From Paramoeba atlantica (taxonomy: Eukaryota > Protista > Discosea): a DNA stretch of 64,000 bases. Location: positions 372,001 through 436,000 of the forward strand of contig CDRNVI010000083.1 of NCBI GenBank assembly GCA_977017575.1, read 5' to 3'. Below the pieces are notes generated by a model, which did no database searches, was not told the origin of the DNA, and was given only the letters and a program-made list of their open reading frames with translations. Positions within the stretch are counted from its first letter, which is position 1, and every line of letters begins with the position of its first letter. Below are positions 5,150 to 64,000 of the stretch, in pieces. The position numbers and the translations under genes were made by a program.

Positions 5150-5174
5150 AACAAAAACAAAGGTCTTAACAAAA
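5150..5174. repeat. Short remnant of the AAAGG(G)TCTT-type repeat
   Basis: aacaaaaacaaaggtcttaacaaaa resembles arrays 58993-59616 and 62787-62844. Joined directly to the 3' end of element C'. Confidence 0.6.
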
Positions 5175-14119: not shown

Positions 14120-14210
14120 TAATAAACAAAAAGGGGGTAATAAACAAAAAGGGGGTAATAAACAAAAAGGGGGTAATAAACAAAAAGGGGGTAATAAACA
14201 AAAAGGGGGT
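14118..14210. repeat. Tandem array of 18-bp AAAAAGGGGGTAATAAAC, ~5 units
   Basis: Directly visible at the truncated 5' end of C1. Confidence 0.96.
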
Positions 14211-14283
14211 AGAACATAAACTTGATGTCATTTTTTTTGGTACGTAACGTGCGGTAGGTTCAAGGTTCTCCCTTAAGCCTTCA

Positions 14284-30510: not shown

Positions 30511-31539
30511 ATAATAATAATAATAACAAAAGACTATACACATGCAACTTTCAACGTACACTCTCCTTAGCGCACTGAAACATCTATCCACATCACGAAT
30601 AGGCCAAACCGCGGATTATGCGAATGGAGGTAGGAGACCTATCCTCTTTTGCAATTAGGAGAAAACGTGTACAAACGAGCACAAGCAAACCAGAACAATC
30701 TTACAATTAGCCATTTTCAGCTCAATATTTCACCATCGATATTCAACGCGGTACCAAGGGTTAAGCAGTGCGCAAGTTCTTGCCTTCATTGCCGCGTCAT
30801 ATGCCCGAAGAGCAACTCAGCGCCAACTTGTTCTCTGCTTGCCAAATAAACCACCGTATACTATCAATATTACGTACCCCACTCAGTGTTTTCGATGAGT
30901 ACGGATATTTAGCAATGAAATATACATAAATGCTCCAGAATATTATTAACGCGTTGATAAATAAATGTACCAAGAGGACATAACACTCCTGAAAATAAGC
31001 GTTCCAGATTAATGCGCAAAGTTATACACAGCAAATTTCGATTACATATAGCGGCTTTTCTTCACAAAAATGGGGGCATTCGTCAGTCTACCCCGTGATG
31101 TCTTGTACTGAGAAAACGTTACTGGATCCCCGGTATTAGCTTCTGGGTTGAGTGAACGAGCAATCCTGACTGTGCTGCCTTCTTCTGTATTTTTCAGTTT
31201 CCCTTTTTTCATATTCACTTTGTGTGGAGATTTTTCTTGGAGATCATGCTCCCTTTTTTGACCGTGATTAGATTTGTTTCCCTCCCTTTGCGTGTGAATG
31301 ACGCATGAAAAACGACGTGCAGCTGTTCTCTGTGCTTTGCGTGCTATTTCATCAGCTTTTTCATTGAAGGAATTCCCGCAGTGTGCCCGCACTTTAATAA
31401 CGTAGAGACTACTATCTGTACAACGCTCTTTAATTGCTCCTTGTATCTGCGTGAGTAGGTCAGCATTTGGCATGCCACCGTATCCAATGATTGAAAAACG
31501 AACCCTAACATTATGATACCAGTCCCATACATAATGAGA
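30509..31539 (-). mobile_element. APE-2 element 3' part: end of RNase H, 3' UTR, (TTA)6 tail
   Basis: Frame SHYVWDWYHNVR...MPNADLL...KVRAHCGNSFNEKADEIARK continues HTDSHYV at 41279-41300. (taa)n at 30509-30526. Confidence 0.85.
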
Positions 31540-39900: not shown

Positions 39901-41278
39901 GTGCTAAACTTTGGGACAGGTGCACTTTCTATTTCAAAATCCATGCTCCGAAGAATTGACGTTGAAGTTAACAACATGAGAAGAATAGTTTGCCAATGCA
40001 ACAGATTAGATGAATACGGAATGAGCTACCCGAATGCTTCTCTGTATCTTGAAACTGAGCGCTTTTCTACTATACACAAGGTTCAGAGGGCCAAGCTCGT
40101 CGGGCACATGCTGAGGCACTCCAGTGATTTTCAAGAGCTTGTACAGTGGAAACAACGCCCGCATGCACGCAATTTATCTCCAAGCGAGGCTTGCTTCAAG
40201 GATCTTAACATTACACTGGAAGAGGCATTGGTATTTGCGTCAAACCGTGAACACTGGTATCGTCTGACAGAAAAATTGCGACGTGAACTTGAACCGCTCA
40301 TAGAATACGAAAAAATTGGGTCAGCAAAGTGGAAAACTGCTCTTGCCAAAGCTAAAAAACAAAAAAGTCCTTCAGAATTACAGTTCGTTGAAGAATCAAA
40401 TGTGCCTTTTCCAGCCTATAAAGCCATGCAAATATATACCGATGGCTCTGTTCTGCCGATGAAAAATACGAAAGAGATTCGAAGTGGCATAGGTATCGTA
40501 GTTCTAAAACCACGATGCGAACCCTCACGGATATCCATACCATTAGAATCAGACACTATTGAGCGAGTAGAGATCTTAGCTTTTCAGCATGCCCTTCTCC
40601 AACTGCCGTCAAAACCATGCGCTTGTCTATTTCATACAGACTCTTACTATCTATGGGACTTCTTTCACAATCTTCGATATCGGCGGCGAATCGTTGGTTA
40701 CAAGGGGGTTTTAAATGGAGATTTGTTCTCCCAGTTAGACGGAAAATTACGGTCCTTAAAACATGATTTGTACTCAATATATATGTGCAAAGTCAAGGGT
40801 CACTCAGGAAATAAATGGAACGACGAGGCAGATGGGTTAGCACTGATTGCAGCGCGAAAAGTTCCTCGACCGCCTGAGCAGAAAAAGAGAAAAACAAGTA
40901 ATGATTCCAACGCATCACAAATCGACAAATCCTTGGAAAAGCTGATAAAACATAGAACCTTGGAAAAGGGAAAGACGAAAACCAATCCAGCACCCAAGCG
41001 TGGCGCCGAGGCTAAAGTCACGCTGTGCGGGAAGATTGCGAAAACTGGTGGAAAGAGGGCGCCTTCATAGTAAGAGTTGGGCGGAAGATGTGTTTCCACC
41101 AGCAGGTTCGGAATACCCTGAGGAAGAGTTCAGGAAGATAAAGGAAAAGTATTGTGTGAAAGTAAAATAGTAGGCACTATTAAACTCTGAACTGGAAGGC
41201 GAGGGAGTATAAGTTCGGGGGGAAAACATTTAACATTCTAACTGACATATGTCGGTCTTTTGGATTGGATTGGATTGG
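36979..41278 (+). mobile_element. APE-1: full-ORF APE-RT-RNase H non-LTR retrotransposon with (TTGGA)4 tail
   Basis: 1359-aa ORF, ~190-bp 3' UTR, tail ttggattggattggattggat. The 13-bp TSD ATACATAATGAGA (31527-31539 and 41279-41291) encloses both element and array. Confidence 0.93.
36991..41070 (+). CDS. Polyprotein: N-terminal beta-rich domain, AP-like endonuclease, RT, RNase H
   Basis: APE: LNVTTL, LGLQETR, NVYSPT, VLGDFNA, LDHIF. RT: GKTPGSDGI, NWRPI, QYGFRP, IDFAKAFPSV, GILQGDVLAPYLF, YADD. RNase H: IYTDGS, HTDS, KVKGHSGNKWNDEAD. Confidence 0.94.
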   Translation: MADASGARMPTAIMNLLACSKLDRGILFRPAKGGTESAKLRARSLGHIMRLLCLGAKLAVVWRYADSSNYSVWEGVVESWVPSRWRVRYAQCSRFTLPFPPCSPHIVLCAARVCAPKRRRRFKKRSRKYRAQSGKRALRDLVGPGGPAVKRMLSVGTLNVTTLKLKGEDEFSLRKCGHLCEVLAFIGLKGINILGLQETRFRFPSSEKSDVLHRKVQYRNAEFHLNLIPARAKDAYNGMGFVSTFPLSKVSKISERIMSGEFEMEEGVATVINVYSPTRDSKDVEVTEFYGELERCCLRIRESNPRRPLIVLGDFNAPLTHITNKDLDPIAAARLKGLSCSIDCKSAHSLCPSSRKWTCELPNKALRQLDHIFICSRFASAVQRHKVIKAPIPTTHCCVIARIKIKWRVSDPKTNTNQLSWISLRNSEDRKNFINKVHDQYRATSNSCRPWGALAQYMKNAVKTFKKPTKRNLNKEAVKDSKIHDLRGLYHKSRNKKVFNALVKENKEEVEEIISDECLEIEKQLRKNHSNPWRTIRKICGQYRDTFSTNGSSRNDKLNEIRSYFMKFSGADDGDPNLSFELLPPPLVPISDAAFTSEELSTSLEHFRRGKTPGSDGIPMEALQAIAAHPDLRSHLLNIINQVHETGVTEEAWRNTLQIPIPKKGDLTNIENWRPICVVNSVVKLMNHMILSRIRPNIEKSLRGNQYGFRPNRATSGAQIIMNEIKTKAFRGQGLSVAFIDFAKAFPSVSFAAIKASLHAFRVRPCLSKMIMSIYDELKGTVRTSIGITKPFPITTGILQGDVLAPYLFVMVLDRILNKALDGKSDGVLLSSRGTRKRGLHEKRLSDIEYADDIALFSDTKSGLTNMIDNVAEESRKANLKLAVGANKTAWLTFGKSQMSSESLNSKFSGMIPKVTSYKHLGHRQENDFTSTVKDRLKLAWGSLFRMNGIWSSPLSPETKLRLYDSIVYPVLNFGTGALSISKSMLRRIDVEVNNMRRIVCQCNRLDEYGMSYPNASLYLETERFSTIHKVQRAKLVGHMLRHSSDFQELVQWKQRPHARNLSPSEACFKDLNITLEEALVFASNREHWYRLTEKLRRELEPLIEYEKIGSAKWKTALAKAKKQKSPSELQFVEESNVPFPAYKAMQIYTDGSVLPMKNTKEIRSGIGIVVLKPRCEPSRISIPLESDTIERVEILAFQHALLQLPSKPCACLFHTDSYYLWDFFHNLRYRRRIVGYKGVLNGDLFSQLDGKLRSLKHDLYSIYMCKVKGHSGNKWNDEADGLALIAARKVPRPPEQKKRKTSNDSNASQIDKSLEKLIKHRTLEKGKTKTNPAPKRGAEAKVTLCGKIAKTGGKRAPS

Positions 41279-43118
41279 ATACATAATGAGAATCAGTATG
41301 TATAACTGTGTTCCTCGTAGAAGACGAAGCTGCCTGAATGCCTAAAAGAAAGGAGCGAAGTTCAGCCCGATCCGGCGAAGTGCATTCCGGTGGTAAAACG
41401 TGTTGTCTGGTTCTTACACCATTTGAATTAACAATAACTATCCCCGAACCCGCGGCTGGTTTTCCTGCTTCTGAACTGACAGCCCCATCTACGTATATGT
41501 GTTCGGAATCAGCTGAGAGAGGAGAATGGTCCGTGCCTTCTTCAATTCCTTCGAGTACTTTGTAGGTGGTAGTATCTAAGTCCTGGCATACCTTCTTCCA
41601 GGATCTAGAGCCGAAAACCATGTAGGATTTGTGAGATTCAAGATATTCACGCAAAAATTTAACTCTCGACGCCCACCAATCCCGATCTCCCGCTAGGACA
41701 TTGAGATCTTCGACATCTAGTTCCATGTCTTCAGCACATGCCTCTGATAGAGTGGGACGATATTTCTTTCCTGTTGCTTTGCGCCATAGCATTACCGATT
41801 TGAAGGGATTATTGCCGCGGATCAGGTGTCCTAGCATTTGAACTCGGAGGACTCGACATGCGTTAGAAAGTCGCATTCTGTTCCCATATAGTGCATCACA
41901 TGGTGTACCTCTTGTACCATCCCAAGTACGAACCCCGATCGCTAGTCTTCTCATTCGGTTCACTTCACAGTCAATTAAATCAGCGTCTTTTTTTATTAGG
42001 GAAAAGTTTCCACAGCCATACAGCAATAAAGGTGAAACCAGAGATTCGAATAAGTGAAATTTTGTGACAAGCGTGAGGCCTGATTTCCATAATGACTGTA
42101 GGCGATGTGTTGCAGCCCACGCTAAGTTAATTCGGTCTTCAAAGTTTACAATGACACCCTTATTAGTAATTTTCAACCCCAAGTATCGATATTCGGTGAT
42201 TCGAGGCACCAACCCCCCATTCGTTAGAATCAAGTCTCCTTGTGCGTCATTCACTTGACCTACTGTCATCCACGCAGTTTTATTTACACCAATGTTGAGA
42301 CGTAAGTTGACTTTCGCAGCTGTTTGTTCCAGTCTTTCCATAACGCGATTCAAATTAGTAAGAGAGGGACATATGAGCACTAAATCATCCGCGTATGCTA
42401 AATAATTTAGACATTGCGCAGGCTTTCCTTGTCTTTTTGTGCCCGCCCTTCGCAAGATAAGTCCGAACTCATTTTCCTTATACACTTCAGCCATGACTCG
42501 ATCCAGAACCATGAGGAATAGGACAGGGGCCAAAACATCACCTTGAAGTGTGCCACACTGGATCGGAAACGTATCAGTAACTCCGCTTTTGCATCGTACA
42601 ACTGCTTCTGTTTTTTCATACATAGAAATTATCATGCTGCTGAGATGCTGCGGGATGTGAAAGGCTTCCAGTGCAGCACGAATGGAGAAAAAGCTGACTG
42701 AAGGAAATGCCTGACGGAAATCCACGAAGCCTAGCGCAACACCAGGATTCTCACGAGACGCTTTCTGGCACAACTCAATGAGGGTTGCTTGTGCTCCCGT
42801 TGTTGCTCTATTGGGTCGGAATCCGTATTGACAATCACTTAATTGAGCATCCACTGTAGGAAGAATTCGATTTAGTATCATACGGTTCATGAGTTTTGCA
42901 GCGTGCACTATTAGACATATTGGTCTCCAATTGTTCATGTTGCCTAAGTCGCCTTTTTTCGGAACTGGGACTTGGATAACTCGTTTCCATGTCTGTGGCG
43001 CTCTTCCGCTCTCACGAACCATATTAATTAAATGTAGAAGAATAGATTGTATGAACGGATCGCTGTTCAGTACTCGTAAGGCTTCAATTGGAATCGAGTC
43101 AATGCCTGGTGCTTTACC
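41279..43118 (-). mobile_element. APE-2 central part (RT and start of RNase H)
   Basis: GKAPGIDSIP, NWRPI, VDFRQAFPSV, GTLQGDVLAPVLF, YADD, IYVDGA, HTDSHYV. Confidence 0.9.
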
Positions 43119-48046: not shown

Positions 48047-50760
48047 AGCAACAGTACATCAGAACTGTACTTTAGCAACAGTACATCAGAACTTAATCCG
48101 ACGTCAGAGCTCAGTTAGAAAATCCCGCAAGAACTGGATGGAGGAAGATGACTCAAAACTGAGCGAGCATGACCGCTTAGAATTAGACATGGACCGCCGT
48201 TCTATTAGCAACGCTTTGCAAGCGGGACGAGCAGGAAATCTAAGCAAAGCAACGCGAATACTAGACAACGTGTATCGAGATTCACCTCTCACGGCAGAAG
48301 AAAAAGCTCAGACACTAAAATCACTTCACCCAAACGGACCCTCACCTCAAGGGACGGACCAAGAGCTACCGAGAATTGCAGTGGTCGAATGCTCCGAATT
48401 GCGCCTAGCGACAGCAAAATTATCCCGAGGTGCATCGCCCGGACCCACTGGTTTTAGCGAATGTATGATGCGGCTCTTAGCAGAAGACGAAGAATCATGC
48501 CTCGCCTTGTGTCATATGTTCCGCGACGTCATCAACGGGGAAATCGCTCACAGTGTACGCAAACGTCTGACTCGTTGCAGAATCATTGCTCTAGCCAAAC
48601 CGAACAACGGCGTAAGACTTGTAGCGATGGGGGATACCATAATTAAAATATGTGGCACAATTCTTCTTCAGCGTCATGAGGCTGCGCTAAAATCGCTCTT
48701 CCAACCTATCCAGCGAGGGATCTTGCAGAAGAATACCTGTGAATCAATTGTACACGAGTTACTTTCTGAGTATGAAGCTGGAAATACGGTGCTCACCATT
48801 GACTTCAAAAACGCGTATAATACACCTCATCGAACAGCAATAGAAAGAGCTCTAACTCAATATCCCATCTTCAAACATTTCATGCGGATTTTTTATTTGG
48901 AATATGGCCAGCCAACCGAACTTCTCTTCTTTGCTAACAACTCGCTGCATTCAGTCATAGAGAGCTCCTCTGGGGTTCGGCAAGGATCCGCGCTGTCATC
49001 GCTTTATTTCTGCGCTGTGTTGCATGGAGCTTTGAAAGAAGTAGCTGATGCTTACCCCGAGGTCACCGTAAGCGCGTACCAGGATGATGTAACGATGAGT
49101 TCTAAAAACGAGGCATCTCTCGAGGTTGCATTCTTGCATTTCAAAGAGCTTACGAGCGATCTGAACTTAGAAATAAATTACCGCAAATGCGAAATTTTTC
49201 AAGGATCCAGGGCATTACACATCAAAGATTCCTCTCTTCGGGAACTTGGGGTTCAAGACTGCGTAGATACAATCAAAGTGCTCGGAGGATACCTAGGCAA
49301 CAACAAAGCCGTAGAACGCAAACTTCTCGAAAAATTGGAGAAGCATAACTGTCTGTTTCGAAGACTCAGCCGCATGGGGCCAAGTAATCTTTCCCTCGCA
49401 ATTTTAAAGCGTTGCACGATACCGCGCCACGATTATCACCTGCGAGTACATAAACCGGGCGCATCACTCCTTCTAGCTCAGACTTTTGACAAAGAGATCT
49501 AACAAGTCTTAAGAAAGTGGTGCGATGCTGACGAAGATGCCTTAGCACTTGCCTCTTTGCCGTGCAAAATGGGAGGATTGGGAATAACCTCCACAGTTCT
49601 GAAACATCGCTATCTTTTTGAAGCTTCCCGTCAATCTATTGATGAGCATTTCAACCCATATGAAGCTCCGATAGAAAACCCTGAGAAGCAACAAAAAGGC
49701 AACAAGACCACAGGGACACAAGGAGTACGCACGGCACTGAAGAAACTAGTCAATGACGAGCACGAAAAACTTGCGGCAGAGCTGAAAACAAAACCACGTT
49801 TCAGTGGAGTTATGAAGCGCTCGAAGGAAGCAAATTTTCATCTCCTCTCGACCAACAACTACGTAAACCCGTACCTCTTCCAGCAAACGCTCAAGATGAG
49901 GCTGGCCGTCAGTCTCCCTTCTTCGAGTAATATCTCCTGTCCTGGATGCGGGGTCAGTGAATCGCCCTCCGGAATATTTCCACACGTTGCAGGTTGCTCG
50001 AAATGTGCTGGGATGAACTGTACGAGAAAACACTCACACATTGTTCGATACCTTTCAAATCTATGTGGAAAAGCTGGACTCCCATGTGCGTTGGAACCGC
50101 GTCTGTATTCATCGTTCTTTTGCACGAAGTGTAAGTGCTCTATTTCACCAGAAGCAGCGGAGAGACACCCATGCAGAGCTCGTCGTATACGTTCGGGCCC
50201 CGATCTGGCCATAATGTGGCCAGATATTGGAGAAGTCCTCTACGATGTCACAGTCGTACACACACTCTGCAGCAGCTACCAGAAACAGTCCAGCAAAGCC
50301 CTTCTAGAGAGTGCCATAGAAAGAAAACATCGAAAATACATAGTGGAGAAAGGAGTGGATCCAAACTATTTTCGATGCATAGCGCTAACTGATTGTGGAA
50401 TGCTGCACGAAAATACGAAGGAGCTGATTAAAGCCCTCTCGAAACGCGCTGACTTAGACCCCAAAGTGATACGGGAAGCCTTCCAATTGGAAAACGAAAA
50501 GTTCGCAGCATACACAATCGTGTCGCAGCTGCGAAATCACATCAAGGGCGAAAAGTGGCTAGGAGGCCTCAGACTCTGAATGTAGTCGGTTTTCGCGACT
50601 CTCCGACAGCACTCCCATCTTATGCCTTTTACTTTACGACCTGTGCCTCCGAAATGTGGTCGTTACGGTAGTTGATCGTGCCGACAGTGCTTACTCTCAC
50701 GCCTTGCTCTTTCGAGTGAGGTTCCCCAACGTGAGGTAGGTAGGATCAGGTTTTTTTTTC
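48047..50760 (+). pseudogene. 5'-truncated family A' CRE-like element with one in-frame TAA (49500-49502)
   Basis: ORFs 48138-49502 and 49557-50579 share a frame and align colinearly with A1 (IDFKNAYN, GVRQGSALS, AYQDD, LPCKMGGLG, GPDLAIMW). Confidence 0.9.
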
Positions 50761-50768
50761 TCGAAAGA

Positions 50769-50828
50769 CTTTACAAAAAGGTTGATCTTTTACAAAAAGG
50801 TTGATCTTTACAAAAATGTTGATCTTTT
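50769..50828. repeat. Three degenerate 18-19 bp units of TTTACAAAAAGGTTGATC
   Basis: Resembles the reverse complement of the 17-bp array (TTACAAAAAACTTGATC). Confidence 0.75.
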
Positions 50829-51044
50829 CAAACTCGTATAACTTCAATGTGATATAAGCCCCTCGGCTAAATTTCCATGCGTAGACTTCTAGATTTTAAC
50901 CCATCTAACCTAAATTTATTCATTACTAACAAAGGAAAAACCACTTAGAAAGCGAGAGCCATCTCACTCTCATCAGAAATAAAAAATAAAAAAAAGTTCC
51001 TCCTGTTAGCGAGTAGTTCTTCCTGTTAGCGAGCGCGCTAACCC

Positions 51045-51295
51045 CACCCGGAACGCGCGGATGGATTGGGCGTGGATTGCTTCCTTTTTTATTATTATTG
51101 TTATCAGAATCATAAATAACTTAAGGCAGGTTGAATTACTAGTTTTGGGCTACAACATGTGAAATTGCTAATTTGATTGCTTGTTTACAAATCATATACC
51201 CCCCCCAATGGACCTTCATGGTTCATGTATTGGGTAATATAGAGGCAATGCCGCGTTTCATACTTCTCCCCCCTTATTAATCGCAAAAAAAAAAG
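51045..51295 (+). mobile_element. Diverged D-type 3' UTR terminal fragment (D5) with short poly(A)
   Basis: ccggaacgcgc...ggattggg...cccccaatggacc...gaggcaatgccgcg...cccccttattaa followed by an A-run, as in the other D 3' UTRs. Confidence 0.8.
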
Positions 51296-51300
51296 TTAAA

Positions 51301-54263
51301 TAAGCATTTACAGGCAGCTCTCCTTACCCACGGAGGCAAGAACACAGACCCACTCGAATCCCTTACGAAGCTCGCTAATCATCTCCTCGCAGGAAAAGCA
51401 CCAAAGGAAGTACAGAGTCACTTTGCGGGAGCCCGACTGTGTGCCCTAGAGAAAGGTGAAAACGACGTTCGCCCAATTGCCGCCGGGGAAACTTTGCGAC
51501 GGTTAGTGAGCAAGGCTGCATGCAACGCAGTCAGGTCCAAGGCTAGAACTCTTTTTGCAGGACGGCAATTTGGTGTGGCTACCCCAGCTGGGAATGAACG
51601 CATTATCCACATGTGCCGCTTGGCCATCTCATCAAACATGGACTGCTCCAACTTTGTACTCTGCAAAGTTGACCTACGGAACGCTTTCAACAACGTGAGC
51701 AGGACTTGTTTTCTTCCTCTAGTCCAAGAGCACTTCCCAGAGCTATTCCCATGGATAAGCTGGTGTTACTCGAACCCCAGCTCGCTCACCTATGGACTCC
51801 GATCACTTTCTTCTGAAGAGGGAGTGCAACAGGGCGACCATTTAGGACCGCTACTCTTCTCGCTAGTGTCCTTAGCGCTCGCAGAAGCAATTGCTCTTCA
51901 GGCTAACCTCTTTGCCCAGTTATGGTACCTCGATGACGGCGTCCTCATTGGACAAGCGCAAGACGTTAGGAACGCCCTCGACACGATTGCCCGAGTAGGT
52001 CCACAATGGGGTTTACATCTTAACATGCCTAAATGTGAGATCGTTACACCCCCGGCATCGGCACACCACGCCTCCGAATTTCCAGATATCCCCTCCAATA
52101 AGATCAATGTCCACGGCAATTTCGACATCCTTGGGAGCCCGGTGGGATCGCCAGAACATTGCTCAGAGTACCTCGAGACACATGCCATAGGCCCCGCGGA
52201 GGACACGCTTGACGCGATAGCCACCATCCGGGACCCACAGGTCGCACTTGCCCTTATCAGACAGTGTGCTGGGTTTTGCAAGATTGTGTACGCTCTGAGA
52301 AGTACACCGCCCCAAGCCATAACCCATCTATGCACCCGACTCGACGGCTTTCTTATGACTGCTACCGAAGCAATAATTTGCCCCCTGGATCGCCACGCGC
52401 GATCTCAGGTACAGCGTTTGAAGCGGCACGGCGGTTTTGGATTAAGGTCCGCAGCGTTGCACGCCACGGCCGCCTACGTATCTTCCGTCGCTTTCTGTGC
52501 GGCCAGAGACTCATGGAACCCCACTGACGCAGATGGATTCGCGGAAGCTGTCAGGGATATCAGCAAGAAGGCCGGAATATCTTTACTTGACTCGCGAGGC
52601 CGTATCCTCACAGCGCCGAACGCCCCTTGCGAAAAAGCAGTTGGCAGCCCTTTCTCCCATAGAAAGAGGAAACGCCCCCTAGGTGTCATCGATCAGCCTC
52701 CCTCGGAGATCTGCCTACCCCTGCGCATAACTTCCCGCACCATGCATACACCTGAGGAAATACACTTTTCTACACCGCTGTACGCCTCGGAGGATTGTGC
52801 TGATACGACCCCCCCGCAATGGTTGAAAGGGAAGATCCCTCGCCAGCGAGACATCAGCTACGCGATCGCGGCCCACGATTTCTCCCAATCATACGAAATG
52901 TCAGATGTGCGGACACGAGCACGATGGATATCTCAGTGCGGTAAAGGGGCAAGCAGCTGGGCTTTTGTAACCCCGTCTAAGGACATGGGGTATTCCTTTA
53001 CCCCTACAGCATTTCGAACCTTGGCCCGTTGGTGGTTAGGGATCGATGTTTACCCTGAAGAAGGGAAGTGTCCTATGCCGAAATGCCCTCTTCCACTCGA
53101 CACAAAAGGGGACCACGCATTGTCTTGCAAGCACGACAACGGAATTATCGCGAGGCACAATGCCGTGGCAGATCAGTTCACGGACCTTTGCAGCAGAGCC
53201 AAACTGGCCCCACAACGGGAGAAAAGTCTTGGCAACAGAGGCCCAGGGGGGGCCCTCACCAGACCTGGCGACGTATACCTGCTCAGTCTTTTCTTGGGGA
53301 ATCCCATCGTGCTTGACTTCGCGGTCACCCATGCTCAGCAACTAAAATATACGGACAAAGTCCGGAACGCTAGCTGGGTAACCGCGGGGTCGTTTGCCGA
53401 GCATTATTCCTCCATGGAGAAGGGCAGGCAGCGCCGGGAAGCCGTTGACGCCGGGTGTGACTTTACGGCCATGGTGGTCGAAAGCTATGGCGCCTGGAGC
53501 CCCAGTGCTTCAGCAGTGATCCGCAAAGTTGGGGAACGTCTCTCACATGCCTCGTGTGGGTTATTGACAGAAGGGGAAGCCACGAGCAGAATCTTTACGG
53601 AGCTGAACGTCACCCTCATGCGCCTTCAGGCGCGCATGATGGTTACTCGTTTACTTCCTGAGGATCCTCTCTCTCCTACGGAGGTGTAAACGTTCGTAAA
53701 CGTCGACCGCGCCCCTTTTGGCACGGGAACACGTTTGCGCCCATGAAGAGCTGGTCGGGATGCTGGTCGAGTCGACAGAGTCTATACTCACGCCTAGCCC
53801 GCGAGGGCTAGGTACCCCAAGTGAGGTAGTACACGGGTAGTGAATCTCCTCCCCGTCGGCCAGCATCCTGTTTCGCGACCGTGTCGCTGTCGACACAGGC
53901 CCGCGCCTGCGCCCTCCCACATAACAAGGGAAGGGTTCACAAGTCAGGCCGTGGAGAGGTCGAAAGACCCGGTCCGGAACGCGCGAATGGATTGGGTCTG
54001 GATTGCTTGTTTTTATTTTTACTGTGTCTTGTTTGTCGTATATACTTAGGGGAGATTGAATTGCTAGTTTTGGGCTGAGAAAAAAGAAAAAGAAAATATA
54101 CTTCTGTGGAAATAAAAAGAATTGCTAATTTGATTGCTTGTTTTAAATTCATATACCCCCCTAATGGACCTACTATGTACTTGGTTCGTCTACTGGGTCA
54201 AAATATAGAGGCAATGCCGCGTTTCATACTTCTCCCCCCTTATTAAAAAAAAAAAAAAAAAAA
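51301..54263 (+). mobile_element. 5'-truncated family D3 element (RT, CCHC, RLE, 3' UTR, poly(A))
   Basis: Frame open from ~51303 to 53689: VRPIAAGE, VDLRNAFN, GVQQGDHLG, WYLDD, RPGDVYL, LDFAV. A-run 54245-54263. Confidence 0.9.
53757..53995 (+). ncRNA. Conserved structured 3' UTR module of D-type elements (representative copy)
   Basis: Enclosing stem gatgctggtcga/tcggccagcatc, CUCAC/GUGAG domain with GCGA tetraloop, and gtgtcg-ctgt-cgacac and ggtc-gaaa-gacc hairpins. Present in D1 (x3), D2, D3 and D4. Structure inferred by eye. Confidence 0.55.
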
Positions 54264-54299
54264 CTTTAACGATAAAGATACAGTTTCTGTACCTTGTTG
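54264..54299 (+). other. Spliced-leader exon sequence (36 nt)
   Basis: CTTTAACGATAAAGATACAGTTTCTGTACCTTGTTG directly after the D3 poly(A), followed by aattatttt and ATG at 54346. Confidence 0.87.
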
Positions 54300-54345
54300 A
54301 ATTATTTTCCTTATTTCACTTTTCTCCAGGTACGCGGTTCCTTCT

Positions 54346-57300
54346 ATGACCAGCCAGAAAAACCTGGGTCTCACGTTGTCACACGACGAACGTTTCGATG
54401 AAGAAGCGCTACCCATGGAATATTACTCCTTTGCCCAGGAAGAGAAATCTCATAACGCTGGAGACTGGGACCAATTCGCCGGGAACGCGCATTTGATTTC
54501 TGGCAGAAGCACGTATAATGAACTCCTTTACACCACCCCTATTCCCGAGAATGTGCCCGAATACTGGACAAGACGAGCTATCATGATAGACGGAGAGAAA
54601 CCCACGCCAGACACGGGGAAGGTAACAGACAATGAGGAGACAAATCACTCCCTCGTCATACGAACAAACATGACACAGCCTCAAGCGAATCCTGACACCA
54701 ACGCTTCACCTGCAACCAAGACTCCGAAACGCAAAACACCGAATTCCACTCCACAATACACCATACAACGTGAATGCCCAGCGGCAGGTTGCACCTGGAA
54801 GACTCCCCCACACGGAGGGCAATGGCAAGCGTTCTACAATCATGTAGCTCACCGACATGGTAAAAATATTTCGACTGATTGGTGGGAAAAGGAAGGTAGA
54901 TTCCTTTGCAAGGATTGCATCCGGCATTACGACAAAAGCAAACAGATCTCTCACCTTAAGCACTGTAAAGGACGAAACCAACCCGTTCGATCACTAACGC
55001 CGCCCATGCCGACGTCTTTTTCGGAGAAAATAAATGAAGAGCATCCAGCTGATCCACTTCCACTTCTTAGCTCAGTTTGTTCACTTCCTTTAAGCACCTG
55101 TAAGGACGTCCCCCATTGCTGCAGATTCTTGTGGGCCAGAATTTTGAGTGAAGCATTAACATCCGCTGTCAAAGAAAACACAGTGCAGGCCTGGACCCTC
55201 CTCGCGATGCTTCCGAAGTGCGTTCTCCCGGCCCCTTACCGTGGCGGTCGTAAAGGGCACACATCGTACTCCACATACGTGGAAAAACGCATGGAGCTCT
55301 GGCTCGGTGGAGACTACCTTCTCCTCTGGGACCAAGCCCTGAAGGATGGCGAGAGAAAACGCTTGAAGTCCAGGAACCCAGAAAGTGACGAAGATAGAGC
55401 GGCAATAAGAGCAGAGCTCTTGGTGCGTCAGGGGGAATTCTCTAGAGGAATGGCCGCCCTATCTGCAGCTCCCATGGCCCCGGACAACGAGGAGACCCTT
55501 GCCAAGCTGTTGGAAAAACACCCAGAGCCCCACGAAAATCCCCTCGAGGAAGATCTACCGCCGATTAAGGGTGCCCCTCTACAGTTGCAAGAAGCAGAGG
55601 TCAGGAATGCGGTTCAAAGCTTTCACAGGGGGTCTTCCGCCGGTACAATGGGCCTCCGTCCTGAGCATCTCCAGTCGGCTATTTTGGAACACGAGGACAA
55701 AAACGTAAGTCCTCTCTCAGCTCTCACACGCCTCGTGAACCACTTACTCGAGGGAAAGGCGCCGCCTGAAGTTCAGCAGTCCTATGCAGGAGCTAGACTT
55801 TGCGCTCTGGAGAAAGGCGAAGACGACGTACGGCCCATTGCGGCGGGCGAAACCCTAAGGCGCCTAGTAAGCAAGGCAGCATGCCGCGCCGTAAAGGAGA
55901 AGGCGGGAACGTTATTCCGTGGACGCCAATACGGTGTTGCCGCATCTGCGGGGTCCGAACGAGTGATTTATCTCTGTCGGAAAACTATGCTCAACAACAT
56001 GGGGAGCGACAAGCTGGTTTTCTGCAAGGTTGATCTGCGAAACGCTTTTAACAACGTCAGCAGACCCGTCTTCGCTCTTCTCACGCGCCTACATTTTCCG
56101 GAACTTTCGCCCTGGGTAGAATGGTGCTACTCAAGTCCGAGTTGCCTCACGTATGGAAACAATTTCATCCCTTCAGCCGAAGGCGTGCAACAAGGTGATC
56201 CTTTAGGCCCACTTTTATTCTCTCTAGTGCTTTCTGAGGTGACGGAAGAGATAGCATCCCGATCAAACCTTGACTCGCAACTGTGGTACCTCGACGATGG
56301 GGTTCTTATGGGAGAGGCTGTGGAGGTCAGAAAGGCGGTGGACGTTTTTTCGGAAGTTGGCCCCCGGTGCGGACTTTTCTTGAATCCTGCGAAAAGTGAA
56401 ATCATAACGCCACCTGCCTCGGCTCATCTCACAACGCTTTTTCCCGAGATCCCAAAGGCGAAAATCCGGCACGACGGGAACTTCGATATCCTTGGGAGCC
56501 CGATCGGGTCGGACGAGCACTGCGCGGAGTTCCTGATGCAGCACGCCATCGACCCAGCACGTGAGACCCTAGCCGCCATAGGTTTAATAGGAGACCCCCA
56601 AGTGGCCAGTGCTCTAATCCGTCAATGCACGGGGTTCTGTCAGATGGTATACGCCCTCCGAACTACACCCCCACAGGCCCTTACCCATCTTTGCTTTTTA
56701 CTAGACGACTCTGTCATGACGGCTGTAGAGTGGGCACTTTTTCCCCTGGACCCCCCCGCACGTGATCAAATACTACGCAGGAAGCGCCACGGAGGCTTCG
56801 GTCTCAGATCGTCGACACTGCACGCAACGGCGGGATACGTTTCATCTGTCGCTCATGCCGCCGACATGGACGACTGGGGCCCCTTGGAAGCTCAAGGATT
56901 TACTACCTCCGTGCAAGACGTAAACGATAAAGCAGGCGCAGCGCTTGTGGACCCATGCACAGGACGCACTCCCAAACAAAACAATCCTCGCACAGATTCT
57001 GATCTACGTCATAGCTTGTCCTCGCAAACAAAACGCCCTCGGCGGACGCAGAATAAAAAGGGATCAGAGAAGACGGCCGAACCGGAGATGATTATCCCTA
57101 GACAGCAACAGCTCAGCCAAGTCATTTCCCAGCAAGAATTTAACACTGCATACGAGAAGGCTGACCCCCGCACACGTGCAAGATGGATATCAGAGTCCGG
57201 AAAAGGTGCCGGGAGCTGGGCTTTCGTGACTCCTTCGCGGACCAAGGGATACGCTTTCACTCCCACAGAGTTCCGTACCTTATCCCGCTGGTGGTTGGGC

Positions 57301-57948
57301 ATGGATGTCTATCCAGAGGATCGACCTTGTCCAGCAAAAGGATGTGACTTACCACTCCTAAAAAATGGGGAACACGCTCTGATGTGTAAGAACGGGCACG
57401 GCCTCATCACCCGCCACAATGCGGTCTGCCAACAGTTCACCTCCTTCTGCAGCAAGGCCAATATGGCTCCGCAAAGGGAAAAAAGTCTCGGAAATCGGGG
57501 ACCTGGAGGAGGTCTCACCAGACCAGGCGATGTTTTTCTTCCCAACTATGAACTGGGAGGTGGCATGGTTCTAGACTTCGCAGTCACCCACGCACAGCAA
57601 TTGAAGTATTTGGACTCAGTCCGTAATGCTAGCTGGGTGGCTGCGGGGTCTTTTGCTGAACACTTCTCTGAAACGAAAGGGAAGCAGCGCCAGGAAGCGG
57701 AAGCAGCTCAGTTACTGTTCACAGCGATGATTGTTGAGTCCTTCGGCTCATGGAGCAGAAGTGCCTTGACGGTCCTGTGGAAGGTGGGAGCGTTACGTGC
57801 CAACGCGTCGAACGGTCTTTTAACAGACACTCAGGCACGAAACATCCTTTTGAAAGAGCTTAATGTCACGTTGATGCGTTCCCAGGCTCGGATGATGGTC
57901 TCCAGGATAGTTGTCAGTGACCCTAACGCCCCCCTTGAAGGCGCTTAG
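54346..57948 (+). CDS. Zinc-finger-RT-RLE polyprotein (family D4)
   Basis: CPAAGC...HVAHRH, FLCKDC...HLKHC, VRPIAAGE, VDLRNAFN, GVQQGDPLGPLLF, WYLDD, CPAKGC...HALMC...HN, RPGDVFL, LDFAV, ESFGSW. Confidence 0.93.
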   Translation: MTSQKNLGLTLSHDERFDEEALPMEYYSFAQEEKSHNAGDWDQFAGNAHLISGRSTYNELLYTTPIPENVPEYWTRRAIMIDGEKPTPDTGKVTDNEETNHSLVIRTNMTQPQANPDTNASPATKTPKRKTPNSTPQYTIQRECPAAGCTWKTPPHGGQWQAFYNHVAHRHGKNISTDWWEKEGRFLCKDCIRHYDKSKQISHLKHCKGRNQPVRSLTPPMPTSFSEKINEEHPADPLPLLSSVCSLPLSTCKDVPHCCRFLWARILSEALTSAVKENTVQAWTLLAMLPKCVLPAPYRGGRKGHTSYSTYVEKRMELWLGGDYLLLWDQALKDGERKRLKSRNPESDEDRAAIRAELLVRQGEFSRGMAALSAAPMAPDNEETLAKLLEKHPEPHENPLEEDLPPIKGAPLQLQEAEVRNAVQSFHRGSSAGTMGLRPEHLQSAILEHEDKNVSPLSALTRLVNHLLEGKAPPEVQQSYAGARLCALEKGEDDVRPIAAGETLRRLVSKAACRAVKEKAGTLFRGRQYGVAASAGSERVIYLCRKTMLNNMGSDKLVFCKVDLRNAFNNVSRPVFALLTRLHFPELSPWVEWCYSSPSCLTYGNNFIPSAEGVQQGDPLGPLLFSLVLSEVTEEIASRSNLDSQLWYLDDGVLMGEAVEVRKAVDVFSEVGPRCGLFLNPAKSEIITPPASAHLTTLFPEIPKAKIRHDGNFDILGSPIGSDEHCAEFLMQHAIDPARETLAAIGLIGDPQVASALIRQCTGFCQMVYALRTTPPQALTHLCFLLDDSVMTAVEWALFPLDPPARDQILRRKRHGGFGLRSSTLHATAGYVSSVAHAADMDDWGPLEAQGFTTSVQDVNDKAGAALVDPCTGRTPKQNNPRTDSDLRHSLSSQTKRPRRTQNKKGSEKTAEPEMIIPRQQQLSQVISQQEFNTAYEKADPRTRARWISESGKGAGSWAFVTPSRTKGYAFTPTEFRTLSRWWLGMDVYPEDRPCPAKGCDLPLLKNGEHALMCKNGHGLITRHNAVCQQFTSFCSKANMAPQREKSLGNRGPGGGLTRPGDVFLPNYELGGGMVLDFAVTHAQQLKYLDSVRNASWVAAGSFAEHFSETKGKQRQEAEAAQLLFTAMIVESFGSWSRSALTVLWKVGALRANASNGLLTDTQARNILLKELNVTLMRSQARMMVSRIVVSDPNAPLEGA

Positions 57949-58992
57949 GGGCATGGCGAAGACGCCATGCGCAGGGCCACATTCCTCTGGCCCGGATGCT
58001 GGTCGAGTCGACAGAGTCTATGCTCACGCCTAGTCCGTCAGGTCTAGGTACCCCAAGTGAGGTAGTACACGGGTAGTGAATCTCCTCCCCGTCGGCCAGC
58101 ATCCTGTTTCTCGACCGTGTCGCTGTCGACACAGGCCCGCGCCTGCGCCCTCCCGTATAACAAGGGAAGGGTCCACAAGTCAGGCCGTGGAGAGGTCGAA
58201 AGACCCGGTCCGGAACGCGCGAATGGTTGAGGAGCCGCCTGCAGGCCGGGTGAGGCGAAGCTGAGGGAGACTTTACCCCCCCTGAAAAGTTGAAAAGTTG
58301 GGTAGGGGAAAGCAGGAAAGTAGGGAGTAAGGTGGGAAAAGTATGCCAAGAGGTGAGAAAGAGGAGAAAGAGAGAGAAAAATTTTCTTTATTTGCATAAA
58401 AACAATATAAAATTGCTAAAAGAAATCCACACCGAGGGGCCGCGCAGGACATAAAAGAAAATAACTATAAAGATGAAATAATAATTTATTTTCACATGAG
58501 TTCACCTATTCATATCATATACATGAAAAGCAAATTGAAACGTATGTAGCTTCTACATCATCTTGACAAAATAGGCCTTTCAAAACAAACAATATAAATT
58601 TATAATATATCACTATGTTAGCGGGTTGCACCCGCCAAACCCGGCGGCTACCTGCCCCTAAGATTCCACAACGGCTACCTACCCCTAAAAGATTCTACAA
58701 GTAAGTAATCAGTAAATATGTAAATTTTCAGAATACATATTGTAGTTTTTATACATGATTCAATTACAACCCCCTTTCGGGGAAAAGAACAGTGAAAATT
58801 ATAACCCCCTTCCGGGGCATTTGACCCGATATTAGCCCCTCGGTTAAATTTCCATGCGTAGACTTCTATTAGTTCCGCGCGGTTGGACTGAAAGGTTAAA
58901 TGTTCAGGAGAAAATTGTAAATCCTTTAACTGGGCAAATTCTCCCAGTGTTGGTTGGTTGGTTGGTTGGTTTCCAACTGGCAAACGACGCGA

Positions 58993-59616
58993 ACCTTTCT
59001 TTTGTTAAGACCCTTTCTTTTGTTAAGACCCTTTCTTTTGTTAAGACCCTTTCTTTTGTTAAGACCCTTTCTTTTGTTAAGACCCTTTCTTTTGTTAAGA
59101 CCCTTTCTTTTGTTAAGACCCTTTCTTTTGTTAAGACCCTTTCTTTTGTTAAGACCCTTTCTTTTGTTAAGACCCTTTCTTTTGTTAAGACCCTTTCTTT
59201 TGTTAAGACCCTTTCTTTTGTTAAGACCCTTTCTTTTGTTAAGACCCTTTCTTTTGTTAACACCCTTTCTTTTGTTAAGACCCTTTCTTTTGTTAAGACC
59301 CTTTCTTTTGTTAAGACCCTTTCTTTTGTTAACACCCTTTCTTTTGTTAAGACCCTTTCTTTTGTTAACACCCTTTCTTTTGTTAAGACCCTTTCTTTTG
59401 TTAAGACCCTTTCTTTTGTTGAGACCCTTTCTTTTGTTAAGACCCTTTCTTTTGTTAAGACCCTTTCTTTTGTTAAGACCCTTTCTTTTGTTAAGACCCT
59501 TTCTTTTGTTAACACCCTTTCTTTTGTTAAGACCCTTTCTTTTGTTAACACCCTTTCTTTTGTTAAGACCCTTTCTTTTGTTAAGACCCTTTCTTTTGTT
59601 AAGACCCTTTCTTTTG
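58993..59616. repeat. Tandem array of 18-bp AAGACCCTTTCTTTTGTT, ~34 units
   Basis: Directly visible, with a recurrent variant AACACCC. Ends in an inverted copy of the unit. Confidence 0.98.
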
Positions 59617-59635
59617 AAAGGGTCTTAGCAAAAGC

Positions 59636-59658
59636 CAACAAGGTACAACAAGGTACAG
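59636..59658 (-). other. 3' part of spliced leader with a 10-nt stutter, joined to one repeat unit
   Basis: Minus strand CTGTACCTTGTTG-TACCTTGTTG-GCTTTTGCTAAGACCCTTTC. Confidence 0.7.
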
Positions 59659-60150
59659 TCTTCATATCACACATATTCATCATTTTGCACGTGCCTCCTT
59701 CTAAAAAAAAGCAAACCTTCTTTCTAAAACAAAGCAACTTCAAAACATTGCCTTTCCCTCATCCTCCGCTGCTAGATAGCGGTGTAATTGGGATAACAGA
59801 GTTGAACCGTTCAATTCTTGAAGCAAAAGAGCAAAATCCTCTAAAATGGACTGTCTGGAGAGTTGACAACGATCTACTAGAGCACCTAGAAGGTTCTTTG
59901 TGTTACTATGCAACGCTCCTCCGGACAATAAAGCCAGGCACTGGAATTTCTCTTTGGCTATCAACCCTGACGAAACGTAACGCTCAAGTTTTTTGTTGGT
60001 CGCTTCCCTCATCATTTTGCACGGTTGTTTGTTCACGTGTGCCTGAGACAATTCCTGGATCACAGTCAAATCGTAGAACACTGTGCCGTCCGCCCAATAA
60101 ACTGCTAGATCCGGCCCTGATCGGTGGATGTTACCATGGCAGCTGCGCTG
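59659..60150 (-). mobile_element. Family F element, 3' part (RLE + UTR)
   Basis: QRSCHGNIHRSGPDLAVYW...YDLTV. Continues 61431-62786 across the 16-bp TSD CATGGCAGCTGCGCTG (60135-60150 and 61431-61446). Confidence 0.87.
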
Positions 60151-60169
60151 CGTCAGAGCATTCGACTTT

Positions 60170-60396
60170 TGTACCAACGGATCTGATATACACGGATATT
60201 TTCTTGCGGAGGAAGAAAACCTGGAAAACTTTCTTCTGCACGATGGCCGAACAGACCTTTATAGCTCAAATGTAGTTTCGACGCCCCGGTCCGATTCGCG
60301 GATCGTGTTACGGTTCCTTCGGAGATGTTCAAGGCGGTTTGTTTATCGAATGTCCACGCCACTGTGCATTTGGTTCCTTTTTTTATTGAAGAACAA
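60170..60396 (-). mobile_element. Internal family B fragment (beta-rich N-terminal domain)
   Basis: Matches 10866-11090 (CSSIKKGTKCTVAW...VYQIRWY). Confidence 0.9.
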
Positions 60397-60946
60397 TTTT
60401 TTTTTTCTTTCTTGTTGTAGTATACAATGGCAGTATACAATGTTGCTGTATACTCAAAATAATAGTTTCACGTGTTTTCCGTTCCTTTATTTATTCACAT
60501 GTTACTCAAAAAAGCAAAACAGTAATAGCCGAATGCTGAAAGCAGCGAAAAAGTGACGACTCAAAGCAGCGAAACGGTGATAACCCAAAGCAGCGAAACA
60601 GTAACAACCAAGAGCTGAAAGCTGCGGAACAATAATCACCAAGCAGCAAAACAAAAATAACCTAAGGCTGAAACCTAACCAAGCAGCGAAACAGTAATCA
60701 CCAAAGGCTGAAAGCAACGAAACATTATTAATCACCAAAGGCTGAAAGCAACGAAACATTATTAACGAAATGTTAAAAGCAGCGAAAATGTAATATTCAG
60801 AGGAGTGTTTAAAGACGGAGTCCTCCTACCCATTTCTCGGTTTCTATATATTGGCGCAATTGAGAGACGACTGCATAGGCTGAATATTTTTCCAGTTCAA
60901 GTTGAAAAGCTTCTCGTACAATCTTGTAATCAACATCAACTTTTGT
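60397..60946 (-). mobile_element. Family A'' 3' end: last ~45 codons and 3' UTR with degenerate TTTCGCTGCTTT repeats
   Basis: Minus strand DVDYKIVREAFQLELEKYSAYAVVSQLRQYIETEKWVGGLRL stop, homologous to the A and A' C-termini. aaagcagcgaaa-like motif repeated ~8 times. Confidence 0.82.
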
Positions 60947-61433
60947 CGAATGATGGGGCGTAGCGACCCCAGCTTCCCTAGCTAACTCACCCGGCGTCGC
61001 ACAACAAGACGCTACATACCTAGGGTGGGTACGATCAAGGTCCCGCGGATGACACTACCCGGTGCCAACAAAACAAGGCACAAAATAACTAGGGTAACGG
61101 TCACCCAGACATCGCAGCGTGAGAATGACACCGCCCGGTACCGGATATAACAAGGTACTAAGAAACTAGGGTGGGTGTCATTCAGCATAATCTTTGGAGT
61201 GTGTTGTGTTTTTCACTTCAAAAGAAGTGTTTTTTCATAAAGAATATTTTCTTGTAGTATATAAAAGGGGATAAAAAAAAGATAAGCTGGCTGCTCGCGC
61301 TCGATCTGGTCAGATCTTCGGATTTGACTTGCGTGCTGCGTGGCACAGCTCCTAGCAAGCGATAAGGGGAGGCTTGTTCTAGGGAGGTAACATCTCCTCG
61401 GAGATATATTGCCTAATTCATCATCATCATCAT
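60945..61433 (+). mobile_element. Second variant of the structured (CAT)5-tailed element
   Basis: The 5' ~250 nt is clearly homologous to the reverse complement of 15580-15830. The 3' part differs and is hairpin-rich (gtcagatc-ttcg-gatttgac). (CAT)5 at 61419-61433. Confidence 0.83.
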
Positions 61434-62786
61434 GGCAGCTGCGCTGGTGTTCTAAGCGCGTTTCCTCTGTTACCGCTGACTGGCAGCTAGCGCACACAAG
61501 GGTGGCAAATTCCCTTGGCTCTTTCTCACAAACCAGACCGCTTTTCAGGCACAAATCGTGAATATAACGGACTAAGGCATTGTGCTTGGTAGTTGCGTTC
61601 ACGCCAGAGCACTTCACGCATCCCGGAATGTGATTCAATGCAGTAACCGATGTTAAAGTGCACTTGCAACCAGGACAAAGTAAATCATTTGGAAGTCGAG
61701 GGTGTTTAAGCGCAAAACGTGGCATTATCGCCAATTTGAATTTGGAACTCGGAACCAGACGCACTTTAGAGGTAATCCAGGAAAATTGCCACTTTTGAGA
61801 TGAAAGCATAATGATGGGAGCGAGGCTTTTATCTTTCAGCAACTCTTCACGGACCCCATTGTGATATTTCTCTTCTGTCACGAACTCATCATTAGGTGGA
61901 TTAATGTCGCAATTATCACTTCCAAGAGGGACCGGAGCGTTCCGTATTTGTGTAGCCCGAGCTGAAGAAGCTTTTCTGTGCTCCAGAGCTGCACTGCGGG
62001 ACGCGTCATAAGAGGCTCCTCTCAACGGTTCCATGGGAGTGATGCCTAAGCCACCTTTGCGAATTGGAAGACGGATCCATGAAATTTGAGTATCTGTCAG
62101 TTGGCCAAACCAGTTTTTGAGGACATCATCTACGCTTGCATCGAACTCCTGTGCCAAATTCAGTGTCGTTTCAGGATCGTGCACTCTAATGTGATAGCGG
62201 TGTCTGACGTTTATGCACTTCGATAGTAATAAGGTAGAAACATTGTTTATGCCCATTTTCTTGAGCCGACGAAATGCAGATTGATGTTTGCTTAATTTCC
62301 CACATAGCTGCTTGTCCACGTGCTGCGTACTACCAATAAAAGCACCAAGCACTTTGGTTGATTCTGAATCTGATTTCACTCCTGCTGAGTCAAGTCTTGC
62401 CGGGATGGGTAATTGCCGTTGTCCCCCAAACCACGCACACTTATGTAATGCCACTTGCAAATTTTGTGTCAGTAGAAGACCCCGCAAACGTTCGAAGGCT
62501 AAGAGGTCCCCATCTCTGGACGCCATGTTGATATCGTCGACAAATGCAAATATCTGCACCCCTGGAAATTCCTCTGCAAGTGTTTCTAGAATCGGTTGCA
62601 ACATGGCGCAGAAATAAAGGGTTGAAAGTGGCGATCCTTGCCGCACCCCCGCCGAGCTTTGAATGGTGCCTGCGAACTTGCCATCTGCCCCGTAAAATAG
62701 CAGTTCAGACGGTTCTGCGTATTCCGCAGTGAAAATGCGTCGGAAAGGACGGAGCGTGGACATTCCAAAAACGCATTTCGCTATCT
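61431..62786 (-). mobile_element. Family F element, 5'-truncated RT/CCHC part
   Basis: GVRQGSPLS, AFVDD, LPIRKGGLG, CPGC...HIPGC..C...HN. Confidence 0.9.
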
Positions 62787-62844
62787 CAAAAAAAACAAAG
62801 GTCTTCAAAAAAACAAAGGTCTTCAAAAAAAAAACAAAGGTCTT
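62787..62844. repeat. Three units of C-A(7-10)-CAAAGGTCTT
   Basis: Directly visible at the truncated 5' end of F. Related to the 58993-59616 unit. Confidence 0.85.
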
Positions 62845-62854
62845 AAATAAGGAA

Positions 62855-64000
62855 TTTTTTTTTTTTTTTTTTTTTTAGTCGATCAATGATTTAGTCTTTT
62901 TTTTTACGACTTTAACGTCTTGTTGTAGTATACAATGGCAGTATACAATGTTGCTGTATACTCAAAATAATAGTTTCACGTGTTTTCCGTTCCTTTATTT
63001 ATTCACATGTTACTCAAAAAAGCAAAACAGTAATAGCCGAATGCTGAAAGCAGCGAAAAAGTGACGACTCAAAGCAGCGAAACGGTGATAACCCAAAGCA
63101 GCGAAACAGTAACAACCAAGAGCTGAAAGCTGCGGAACAATAATCACCAAGCAGCAAAACAAAAATAACCAAAGGCTGAAACCTACCCAAGCAGCGAAAC
63201 AGTAATCACCAAAGGCTGAAAGCAACGAAACATTATTAATCACCAAAGGCTGAAAGCAACGAAACATTATTAACGAAATGTTAAAAGCAGCGAAAATGTA
63301 ATATTCAGAGGAGTGTTTAAAGACGGAGTCCTCCTACCCATTTCTCGGTTTCTATATATTGGCGCAATTGAGAGACGACTGCATAGGCTGAATATTTTTC
63401 CAGTTCAAGTTGAAAAGCTTCTCGTACAATCTTGTAATCAACATCAACTTTTGTCGAATGATGGGGCGTAGCGACCCCAGCTTCCCTAGCTAACTCACCC
63501 GGCGTCGCACAACAAGACGCTACATACCTAGGGTGGGTACGATCAAGGTCCCGCGGATGACACTACCCGGTGCCAACAAAACAAGGCACAAAATAACTAG
63601 GGTAACGGTCACCCAGACATCGCAGCGTGAGAATGACACCGCCCGGTACCGGATATAACAAGGTACTAAGAAACTAGGGTGGGTGTCATTCAGCATAATC
63701 TTTGGAGTGTGTTGTGTTTTTCACTTCAAAAGAAGTGTTTTTTCATAAAGAATATTTTCTTGTAGTATATAAAAGGGGATAAAAAAAAGATAAGCTGGCT
63801 GCTCGCGCTCGATCTGGTCAGATCTTCGGATTTGACTTGCGTGCTGCGTGGCACAGCTCCTAGCAAGCGATAAGGGGAGGCTTGTTCTAGGGAGGTAACA
63901 TCTCCTCGGAGATATATTGCCTAATTCATCATCATCATCATGGCAGCTGCGCTGGTGTTCTAAGCGCGTTTCCTCTGTTACCGCTGACTGGCAGCTAGCG
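62855..64000 (-). mobile_element. Near-identical second copy of the F::(CAT)n element::A'' chimera, with longer 3' UTR and poly(A)
   Basis: 62919-64000 repeats 60411-~61492 with a few SNPs/indels, including both internal junctions. T-run 62855-62876. Confidence 0.9.

Follow-up and report, generated by a model that had tools for sequence, protein, structure and literature searches.

Tandem monomers at the 5′ end of long interspersed nuclear elements (LINEs) are known mainly from rodents, and their origin is unsettled; the monomer of mouse L1Md is about 200 bp long, and mouse L1 monomers are usually assumed to change in place by slippage and unequal exchange. Full-length L1Md elements begin with tandem units that vary in copy number and belong to subfamily-specific types, and a short non-repeated tether separates these units from the open reading frame (ORF) (PMC6454616; PMC9022269). 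Here, we analyzed a 64,000-nucleotide (nt) stretch of contig 83 in the 45.7-Mb assembly of Paramoeba atlantica (C83:372001-436000, hereafter the window), which contains a LINE preceded by a long array of short tandem units, together with several smaller arrays of units of 17–19 nt (Table 1). Comparison with mouse L1Md, the closest known system, revealed that the Paramoeba LINEs share (i) tandem units at the 5′ end, directly upstream of the ORF, (ii) a variable number of these units, (iii) a unit type that is specific to the subfamily, and (iv) a tether before the ORF. By contrast, the Paramoeba units, which we designate heads, are only 17–19 nt long, occur in up to hundreds of copies, have a boundary that coincides with the apex of a hairpin next to the ATG, and are found also detached from LINEs and on other elements. 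Such miniature heads make the origin of LINE monomers testable on short, easily synthesized templates.

Two further systems invite comparison. The 3′ tails of stringent-type LINEs such as eel UnaL2 consist of lineage-tied repeats of 5–8 nt, which are thought to arise by slippage of the reverse transcriptase. The heads likewise are short tandem units tied to one LINE lineage, whereas they lie at the 5′ end, and the window LINE has a separate (TTGGA)n tail at its 3′ end. Non-long-terminal-repeat reverse transcriptases such as that of R2 are known for template jumping and for 5′-junction additions made at the end of the template (PMC2881922). These additions comprise a few bases or one extra template; here, by contrast, hundreds of identical 18-nt units are present. 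A literature search found no description of LINE heads of this kind, which is weak evidence of novelty given the incomplete coverage of the search. Newly described here are a family of co-diverging units that spans the clade, the hairpin, the modular use of whole units, and an interpretation of the three arrays at 50769-62844.

Reading the element starts from the DNA, we consider it probable (roughly 0.72) that every repeat type represents the head of a particular lineage within a single LINE clade, that is, the first 17–19 nt of the element reiterated on the sense, T-rich strand and ending before the ATG. The first 200 residues of the window LINE gave 167 matches in the genome, ranging from 100% down to 30% identity, and the DNA upstream of 54 of them was read. 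The first lead was a locus (L056) in which 33 units of the type found at 50770 precede, at a distance of 10 nt, the start of an ORF with 66% identity to the window LINE; arrays of the 31537 type similarly lie upstream of near-identical LINE copies (L057 and L059). A sense-strand array with a period of 16–20 nt (at least 1.9 units) ends 0–25 nt before the conserved start at 42 of the 54 LINE 5′ ends. The remaining 12 comprise 6 with a single unit (L068, L077, L086, L093, L101, and L106), 2 in which the spliced leader is joined at or near the unit (L070 and L102), 1 with a partial unit plus an inverted array, and 3 that are unclear.

At least 21 unit types, one per LINE lineage, were distinguished, and the unit length is 17–19 nt in all 21 diverged lineages. 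One unit is common to all sampled copies of a lineage, for example in L072 and L078-81, in L074, L095-96, L104-105, and L116, or in L097, L098, and L100. The unit at 62786 is that of a LINE lineage of 47% identity, in which it stands upstream of the start codons in L024, L071, L083-L085, and L088; the unit type of L017 is that of the lineage of L076 and L091. Within the arrays, the units are homogeneous (96–100%). The initial annotation of the window had suggested one unit per retrotransposon lineage and proposed to look for an association of each unit with an element family. Both points are supported by the 54 5′ ends, in which each sampled lineage has its own unit at the same position before the start codon, and by the co-divergence of the units with the LINE protein.

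In a common phase, which was set by where the periodicity breaks, nearly all units start with G (GACC, GATC, GAAC, etc.), carry a T-run at positions 9–13, and end in TAA or a similar sequence. The CAAAA and TCTT motifs that had first been seen to be shared among the window arrays correspond, on the opposite strand, to the T-run plus G and to the junction between 2 units (TAA followed by GA), respectively. The mean edit distance among the 21 phased units is 6.8, compared with 9.8 ± 0.15 for composition-matched shuffles (0 of 300 shuffles reach 6.8), in a comparison in which the choice of a phase starting with G and ending with A fixes 2 of the 18 positions. The unit edit distance is correlated with the N-terminal protein distance over 200 residues (Mantel Spearman r 0.285, a value reached by 8 of 10,000 permutations), and the mean unit distance over 4 bins of rising protein distance is 2.3, 4.6, 5.8, and 6.2 edits. 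An earlier version of this test, which used 45 nt of the ORF and included 3 mis-phased units, gave r = 0.08 (not significant) and was rerun with the 200-residue N-termini and corrected phases. These results support the view that the units are homologous and that their likeness stems from the kinship of the LINE lineages. Diverged homologous units had indeed been proposed from the window; the alternative named at that time, unrelated satellites no more alike than random AT-rich ones, is not what the shuffles and the position at LINE 5′ ends show.

The last unit of the array forms part of a hairpin. In 19 of the 21 lineages, the segment from its T-run to the TAA pairs with the bases just before the ATG, with a fold that reaches the 5% tail of shuffles or goes below it (mean z −3.4). 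The sequences of the hairpin arms vary among lineages; therefore, changes in both arms have preserved the pairing. The repeated sequence gives way to the unique sequence at the hairpin apex every time. Thus, the unit consists of a 5–8-nt 5′ overhang and the left arm of the hairpin, and the right arm abuts the ATG. In the lineage of L076, L091, and L090, the ancestral start codon has been lost and an ATG 45 nt upstream is used instead; the long hairpin between the head unit and the former pre-ATG segment has been retained and extends across the new start.

The ORF of the window LINE encodes endonuclease, reverse transcriptase, and RNase H domains, and its matches in a protein atlas are only generic LINE clusters of these 3 domains, which assign it to no particular clade. 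An 11-bp target-site duplication (31528-31538 and 41280-41290) encloses the array, the LINE, and the (TTGGA)4 tail. Therefore, the 5.4-kb array belongs to the insertion. This arrangement bears on the explanation that the arrays are pre-existing satellites that were targeted by site-specific elements of the Dong or R2 type. Some elements do lie inside arrays: in L022-24 and L026 this is a 454-bp element, and another element, tagged with a spliced leader, is bordered by array on each side. T-run-primed junctions are present at 59616 and in L064. However, the duplicated target of the window LINE is unique DNA, arrays stand only on the 5′ side of their LINE rather than on both sides at a constant position, and the unit type follows the LINE lineage and pairs with that lineage's own 5′ untranslated region (UTR), all of which make targeted satellites a very unlikely source of the arrays.

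Among copies of the window LINE that match at 97–100% over the first 200 residues and differ from one another in their flanks, the number of units is 2, 4, 10, 16, 44, 55, at least 62, 316, and ~450; over all sampled lineages, the copy number ranges from 1 to ~450. Most arrays of the window-LINE lineage begin 0–3 nt from unit base 1. The small and medium arrays of this lineage consist of 18-mers. The 2 giant arrays have 13–20 18-mers beside the ORF and hundreds of 17-mers distal to them, with none of the 18-mers at the distal edge. This polarity fits growth at the 5′ end of the element better than unequal exchange.

The polarity is also the first of 4 observations that speak against an explanation without reverse transcription, in which the unit is a functional 5′ monomer (a start site, a promoter, or a trans-splice acceptor) multiplied in place by slippage and unequal exchange: (i) the new 17-mers of each giant array are confined to its distal side, where the edge retains no old units; (ii) heads made of whole units are joined to a truncated element unrelated to them and to a 3′ UTR that has been cut (described below); (iii) the unit length is held in 21 diverged lineages; and (iv) copies capped by a spliced leader, for which a promoter is unnecessary, show similar stutters at their 5′ terminus. 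A functional monomer would nevertheless suit the pyrimidine tract followed by AG in each unit, as for a trans-splice acceptor, the spliced leader at or near the unit in L070 and L102, the homogeneity of the arrays, the ownerless arrays of 22–44 kb with blocks of variant units, and the strand flips within arrays (L124). On balance, we regard multiplication in place without reverse transcription as unlikely; re-copying and in-place growth may both be at work.

The window as a whole is a nest of retroelements, many pieces of which recur inside it. Several of its ORFs, of 1150–1250 residues, have reverse transcriptase as their sole domain match and end in a CCHC/restriction-like endonuclease region. 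Therefore, we designate these elements CRE-like. Two of the window arrays, those at 50770 and 62786, are LINE heads that adjoin CRE-like elements, and both are composed of whole units, starting at unit base 1 and ending at a unit boundary. The initial annotation had cautioned, correctly, that the arrays at 50769 and 58993 are not upstream of a recognizable 5′ end. At 50769, the CRE-like element is cut where the array starts, and ten other genomic copies of it (L037-L046) read past this point. The short interspersed nuclear element (SINE)-like repeat on the other side of the array has nine genomic copies that share its start base and have different upstream flanks. At 62786, the units join element Y with a 2–3-nt overlap to GATAGCG..., an internal point of this CRE-like element, and seven other copies of Y (L004-L010) read through the junction. 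Upstream of these units are 11 nt of filler and the A22 with which the previous copy ends. Three tandem copies of the whole block (three units, Y, A22, and filler) are present, with a period of 2508–2513 bp (C83:434400-441317; 60410-64000 of the window and beyond), and a related full-length element stands at the top of this series.

If the arrays are LINE heads, they would probably be built as follows. As first-strand synthesis ends, the 5′-terminal ~18 nt of the RNA would be re-copied by its reverse transcriptase through template jumping or realignment. On occasion, the enzyme might jump from another RNA onto a head, which would yield the whole-unit head on the truncated CRE-like element (62786) and the detached head (50770). 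The T-runs of existing arrays may also prime new insertions, as at the right end of the 58994 array, and arrays that have lost their LINE may persist and grow as satellites. A supporting sign for re-copying of 5′ ends comes from the spliced leader, which is of the kinetoplastid type and ends ...CAGTTTCTGTACCTTGTTG (54268-54300 in the window). Its 5′ part has 429 genome matches, some of which may be genuine spliced-leader RNA genes; among the first 100 listed, ~17 sites show a stutter, that is, a direct partial duplicate of the first 10–16 nt of the leader just upstream, 3 show an inverted snap-back copy of the leader, and ~37 have a poly(A) tract before the site.

A more specific version of this mechanism, which we hold to be unlikely, is that the LINE reverse transcriptase would behave like a telomerase toward its own RNA: once it had arrived at the 5′ end, its RNase H would cut ~18 nt behind the polymerase site and free an 18-nt terminal RNA with defined ends, a piece that the enzyme would then copy repeatedly by end-to-end jumps. 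The polymerase-to-RNase H spacing of retroviral enzymes is ~18 nt, which matches the 17–19-nt period. Such fragments would account for the fixed period, the whole-unit modules, and the heads on foreign complementary DNA (cDNA) ends. If this version were true, the LINE would represent a living intermediate between retrotransposon and telomerase chemistry.

A telomerase-like enzyme copying dedicated paralogous template RNAs, one per repeat type, had been the first idea for the window arrays. In keeping with it, the unit types form a family, some arrays are at cDNA ends, and a (TTAGGG)5 array is absent from the assembly. However, the arrays are internal, and that of the window LINE lies inside a target-site duplication; all unit types but two are borne at the 5′ end by some LINE lineage; and the repeats at the ends of C16, C43, and C29 are instead 10 nt long and GA-rich or complementary. 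Head-type arrays were not found at 19 of the 20 sampled contig ends (L148-L167), the exception being an 18-nt head-like array at the right end of C40 (L155). Moreover, the loci with about one unit are LINE 5′ ends rather than free-standing RNA genes, and thus any “template” is the 5′ end of the LINE RNA itself and separate template RNAs are not needed. Single-copy loci holding ~1.5 units in a shared RNA context, which had been suggested as a check, were not seen as free-standing loci in a genome that was not searched exhaustively. Taken together, a telomerase with template RNAs of its own is extremely improbable here.

What the heads would share with telomerase repeat addition, if the mechanism proposed for them holds, is the repeated copying of a short RNA segment with defined ends; they differ in having no separate template RNA, in being internal and inside a target-site duplication, and in being T-rich on the sense strand. 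Should the reverse transcriptase indeed reiterate the end of its template, this would bear on the evolution of telomerase-type repeat addition from retroelement enzymes, and the heads would be a natural case for how a reverse transcriptase might build telomere-like repeats from its own RNA end.

Several observations weigh against taking all repeat types as LINE heads formed by re-copying: (i) a two-pattern genome search found no LINE start within 34–38 nt of the end of a 58994 unit, and for the GGGGG-containing unit (4113 type) the assembly holds one chance-like match only; (ii) the starts of the 58994-type arrays are not strongly phased; (iii) the arrays of 22–44 kb and the strand flip in L124 look like ordinary satellite dynamics; (iv) a head-like unit precedes only ~6 of the 100 spliced-leader 5′ ends listed first, and therefore heads on foreign cDNA ends are the exception; and (v) the combination of three units and Y arose once and was triplicated afterwards, and so counts as a single event.

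The 58994 unit is present in more than 5000 copies in the genome; its arrays, which include blocks of variant units, extend to 44 kb (C9) and 22 kb (C63). The strand flip of L124 (C63:452000-452400) lies at a GTTAAC palindrome inside the 22-kb array. No LINE follows the end of another array of this type (L123), where the downstream sequence is a mosaic made up of other repeats. Whole-unit modularity also shows in these arrays: among 15 distinct ends (16 listed, with one palindromic junction counted on both strands), 9 are at boundary phases 16–18 or 1, and 4 are at the end of the T-run. The chance of finding 9 of 15 ends in 4 of 18 phases is ~0.002 by our own binomial estimate. The array in the window starts near unit base 1 and ends after the T-run, where it is followed by an inverted unit and part of the spliced leader. 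From this junction we infer that 59617-59657 arose by reverse transcription of a short RNA with a spliced-leader cap, for which the T-run at the array end served as primer; T-run or boundary junctions like that at 59616 are also present in L064 and L120. If these arrays derive from LINE heads, they illustrate that retrotransposon ends are able to seed large satellites, here of up to 44 kb. For the GGGGG-containing unit, two loci share an 18-nt hairpin beside the array. A rule that the T-rich array always precedes a 5′ end was rejected, since L061 and L064 have the A-rich strand beside element ends and since so few of the listed spliced-leader 5′ ends (~6 of 100) follow a head-like unit.

Table 1. 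Tandem arrays and retroelements in the window (positions count from the first base of the window; period and copy number are from Tandem Repeats Finder).
Feature	Position	Strand	Period and copies	Details
GGGGG-unit array	4113-5001	-	49 copies	Head-like; no LINE owner found
GGGGG-unit array	6842-7004		9 copies	Head-like; no LINE owner found
GGGGG-unit array	14120-14211		5 copies	Head-like; no LINE owner found
LINE head	31537-36977	+	17 nt, 319 copies	~297 distal 17-mers, then 19-20 proximal 18-mers
LINE ORF	36991-41070	+		Pfam Exo_endo_phos, RVT_1, RNase_H (endonuclease, reverse transcriptase, RNase H)
(TTGGA)4 3′ tail, then target-site duplication	41260-41290	+		Duplication TACATAATGAG; duplicate also at 31528-31538
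CRE-like element	48138-50769	+		Reverse transcriptase and restriction-like endonuclease; 3′ UTR cut at 50769, the array start
Detached head of the 66%-identity LINE lineage	50770-50832	-	18-19 nt, 3.4 copies	Three whole units, GATC to GTAAA; no LINE adjoining
Short SINE-like repeat	50846-50993	+		A-rich tail; 13 nt of filler after the 50770 array
Head-like array	58994-59616	+	18 nt, 34.6 copies, matches 98%	Unit GACCCTTTCTTTTGTTAA; no LINE owner found
Inverted unit and last 13 nt of the spliced leader	59617-59657	-		10-nt stutter; leader from 54268-54300
CRE-like element Y, 5′-truncated	60410-62785	-		ORF end with CCHC/restriction-like endonuclease region, and 3′ UTR
Head of the 47%-identity LINE lineage	62786-62844	-	18-19 nt, 3.1 copies	Three units, GACC to ...TTGA, fused to the 5′ truncation point of the CRE-like element

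Array detection thus recovered related arrays of 17–19-nt units at the sites that the initial annotation had listed. The entry at 5150 stands in part: only ~1.4 units are present, at the 3′ end of a CRE-like element and before an (AATA)n tract. Directly after the array at 6842-7004, positions 7005-7035 hold ~1.5 units of another LINE head type (ATGAGAACCTTTCTTTTT), that of the L110/L111 lineage.

Of the GA-rich or complementary repeats at contig ends, that at the start of both C16 and C43 is (AAGAGGGAGG)n; C43 closes with (AAGAGGAAGA)n on its right, and C29 has (TCTTTCTTCC)n at its left end. They are candidate chromosome-end repeats, but they do not all share one strand orientation. Irregular GA-rich tracts similar to GAAGAAAGAG (58283-58380 and L064), which replace poly(A) after cut 3′ ends of CRE-like elements, resemble these contig-end repeats. 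The 454-bp element (58421-58872; L018-L035) is non-coding, ends ...GTAGACTTCTA, and forms head-to-tail tandems at many loci; its copies in L022-24 and L026 lie inside heads of the 47%-identity lineage at one constant point.

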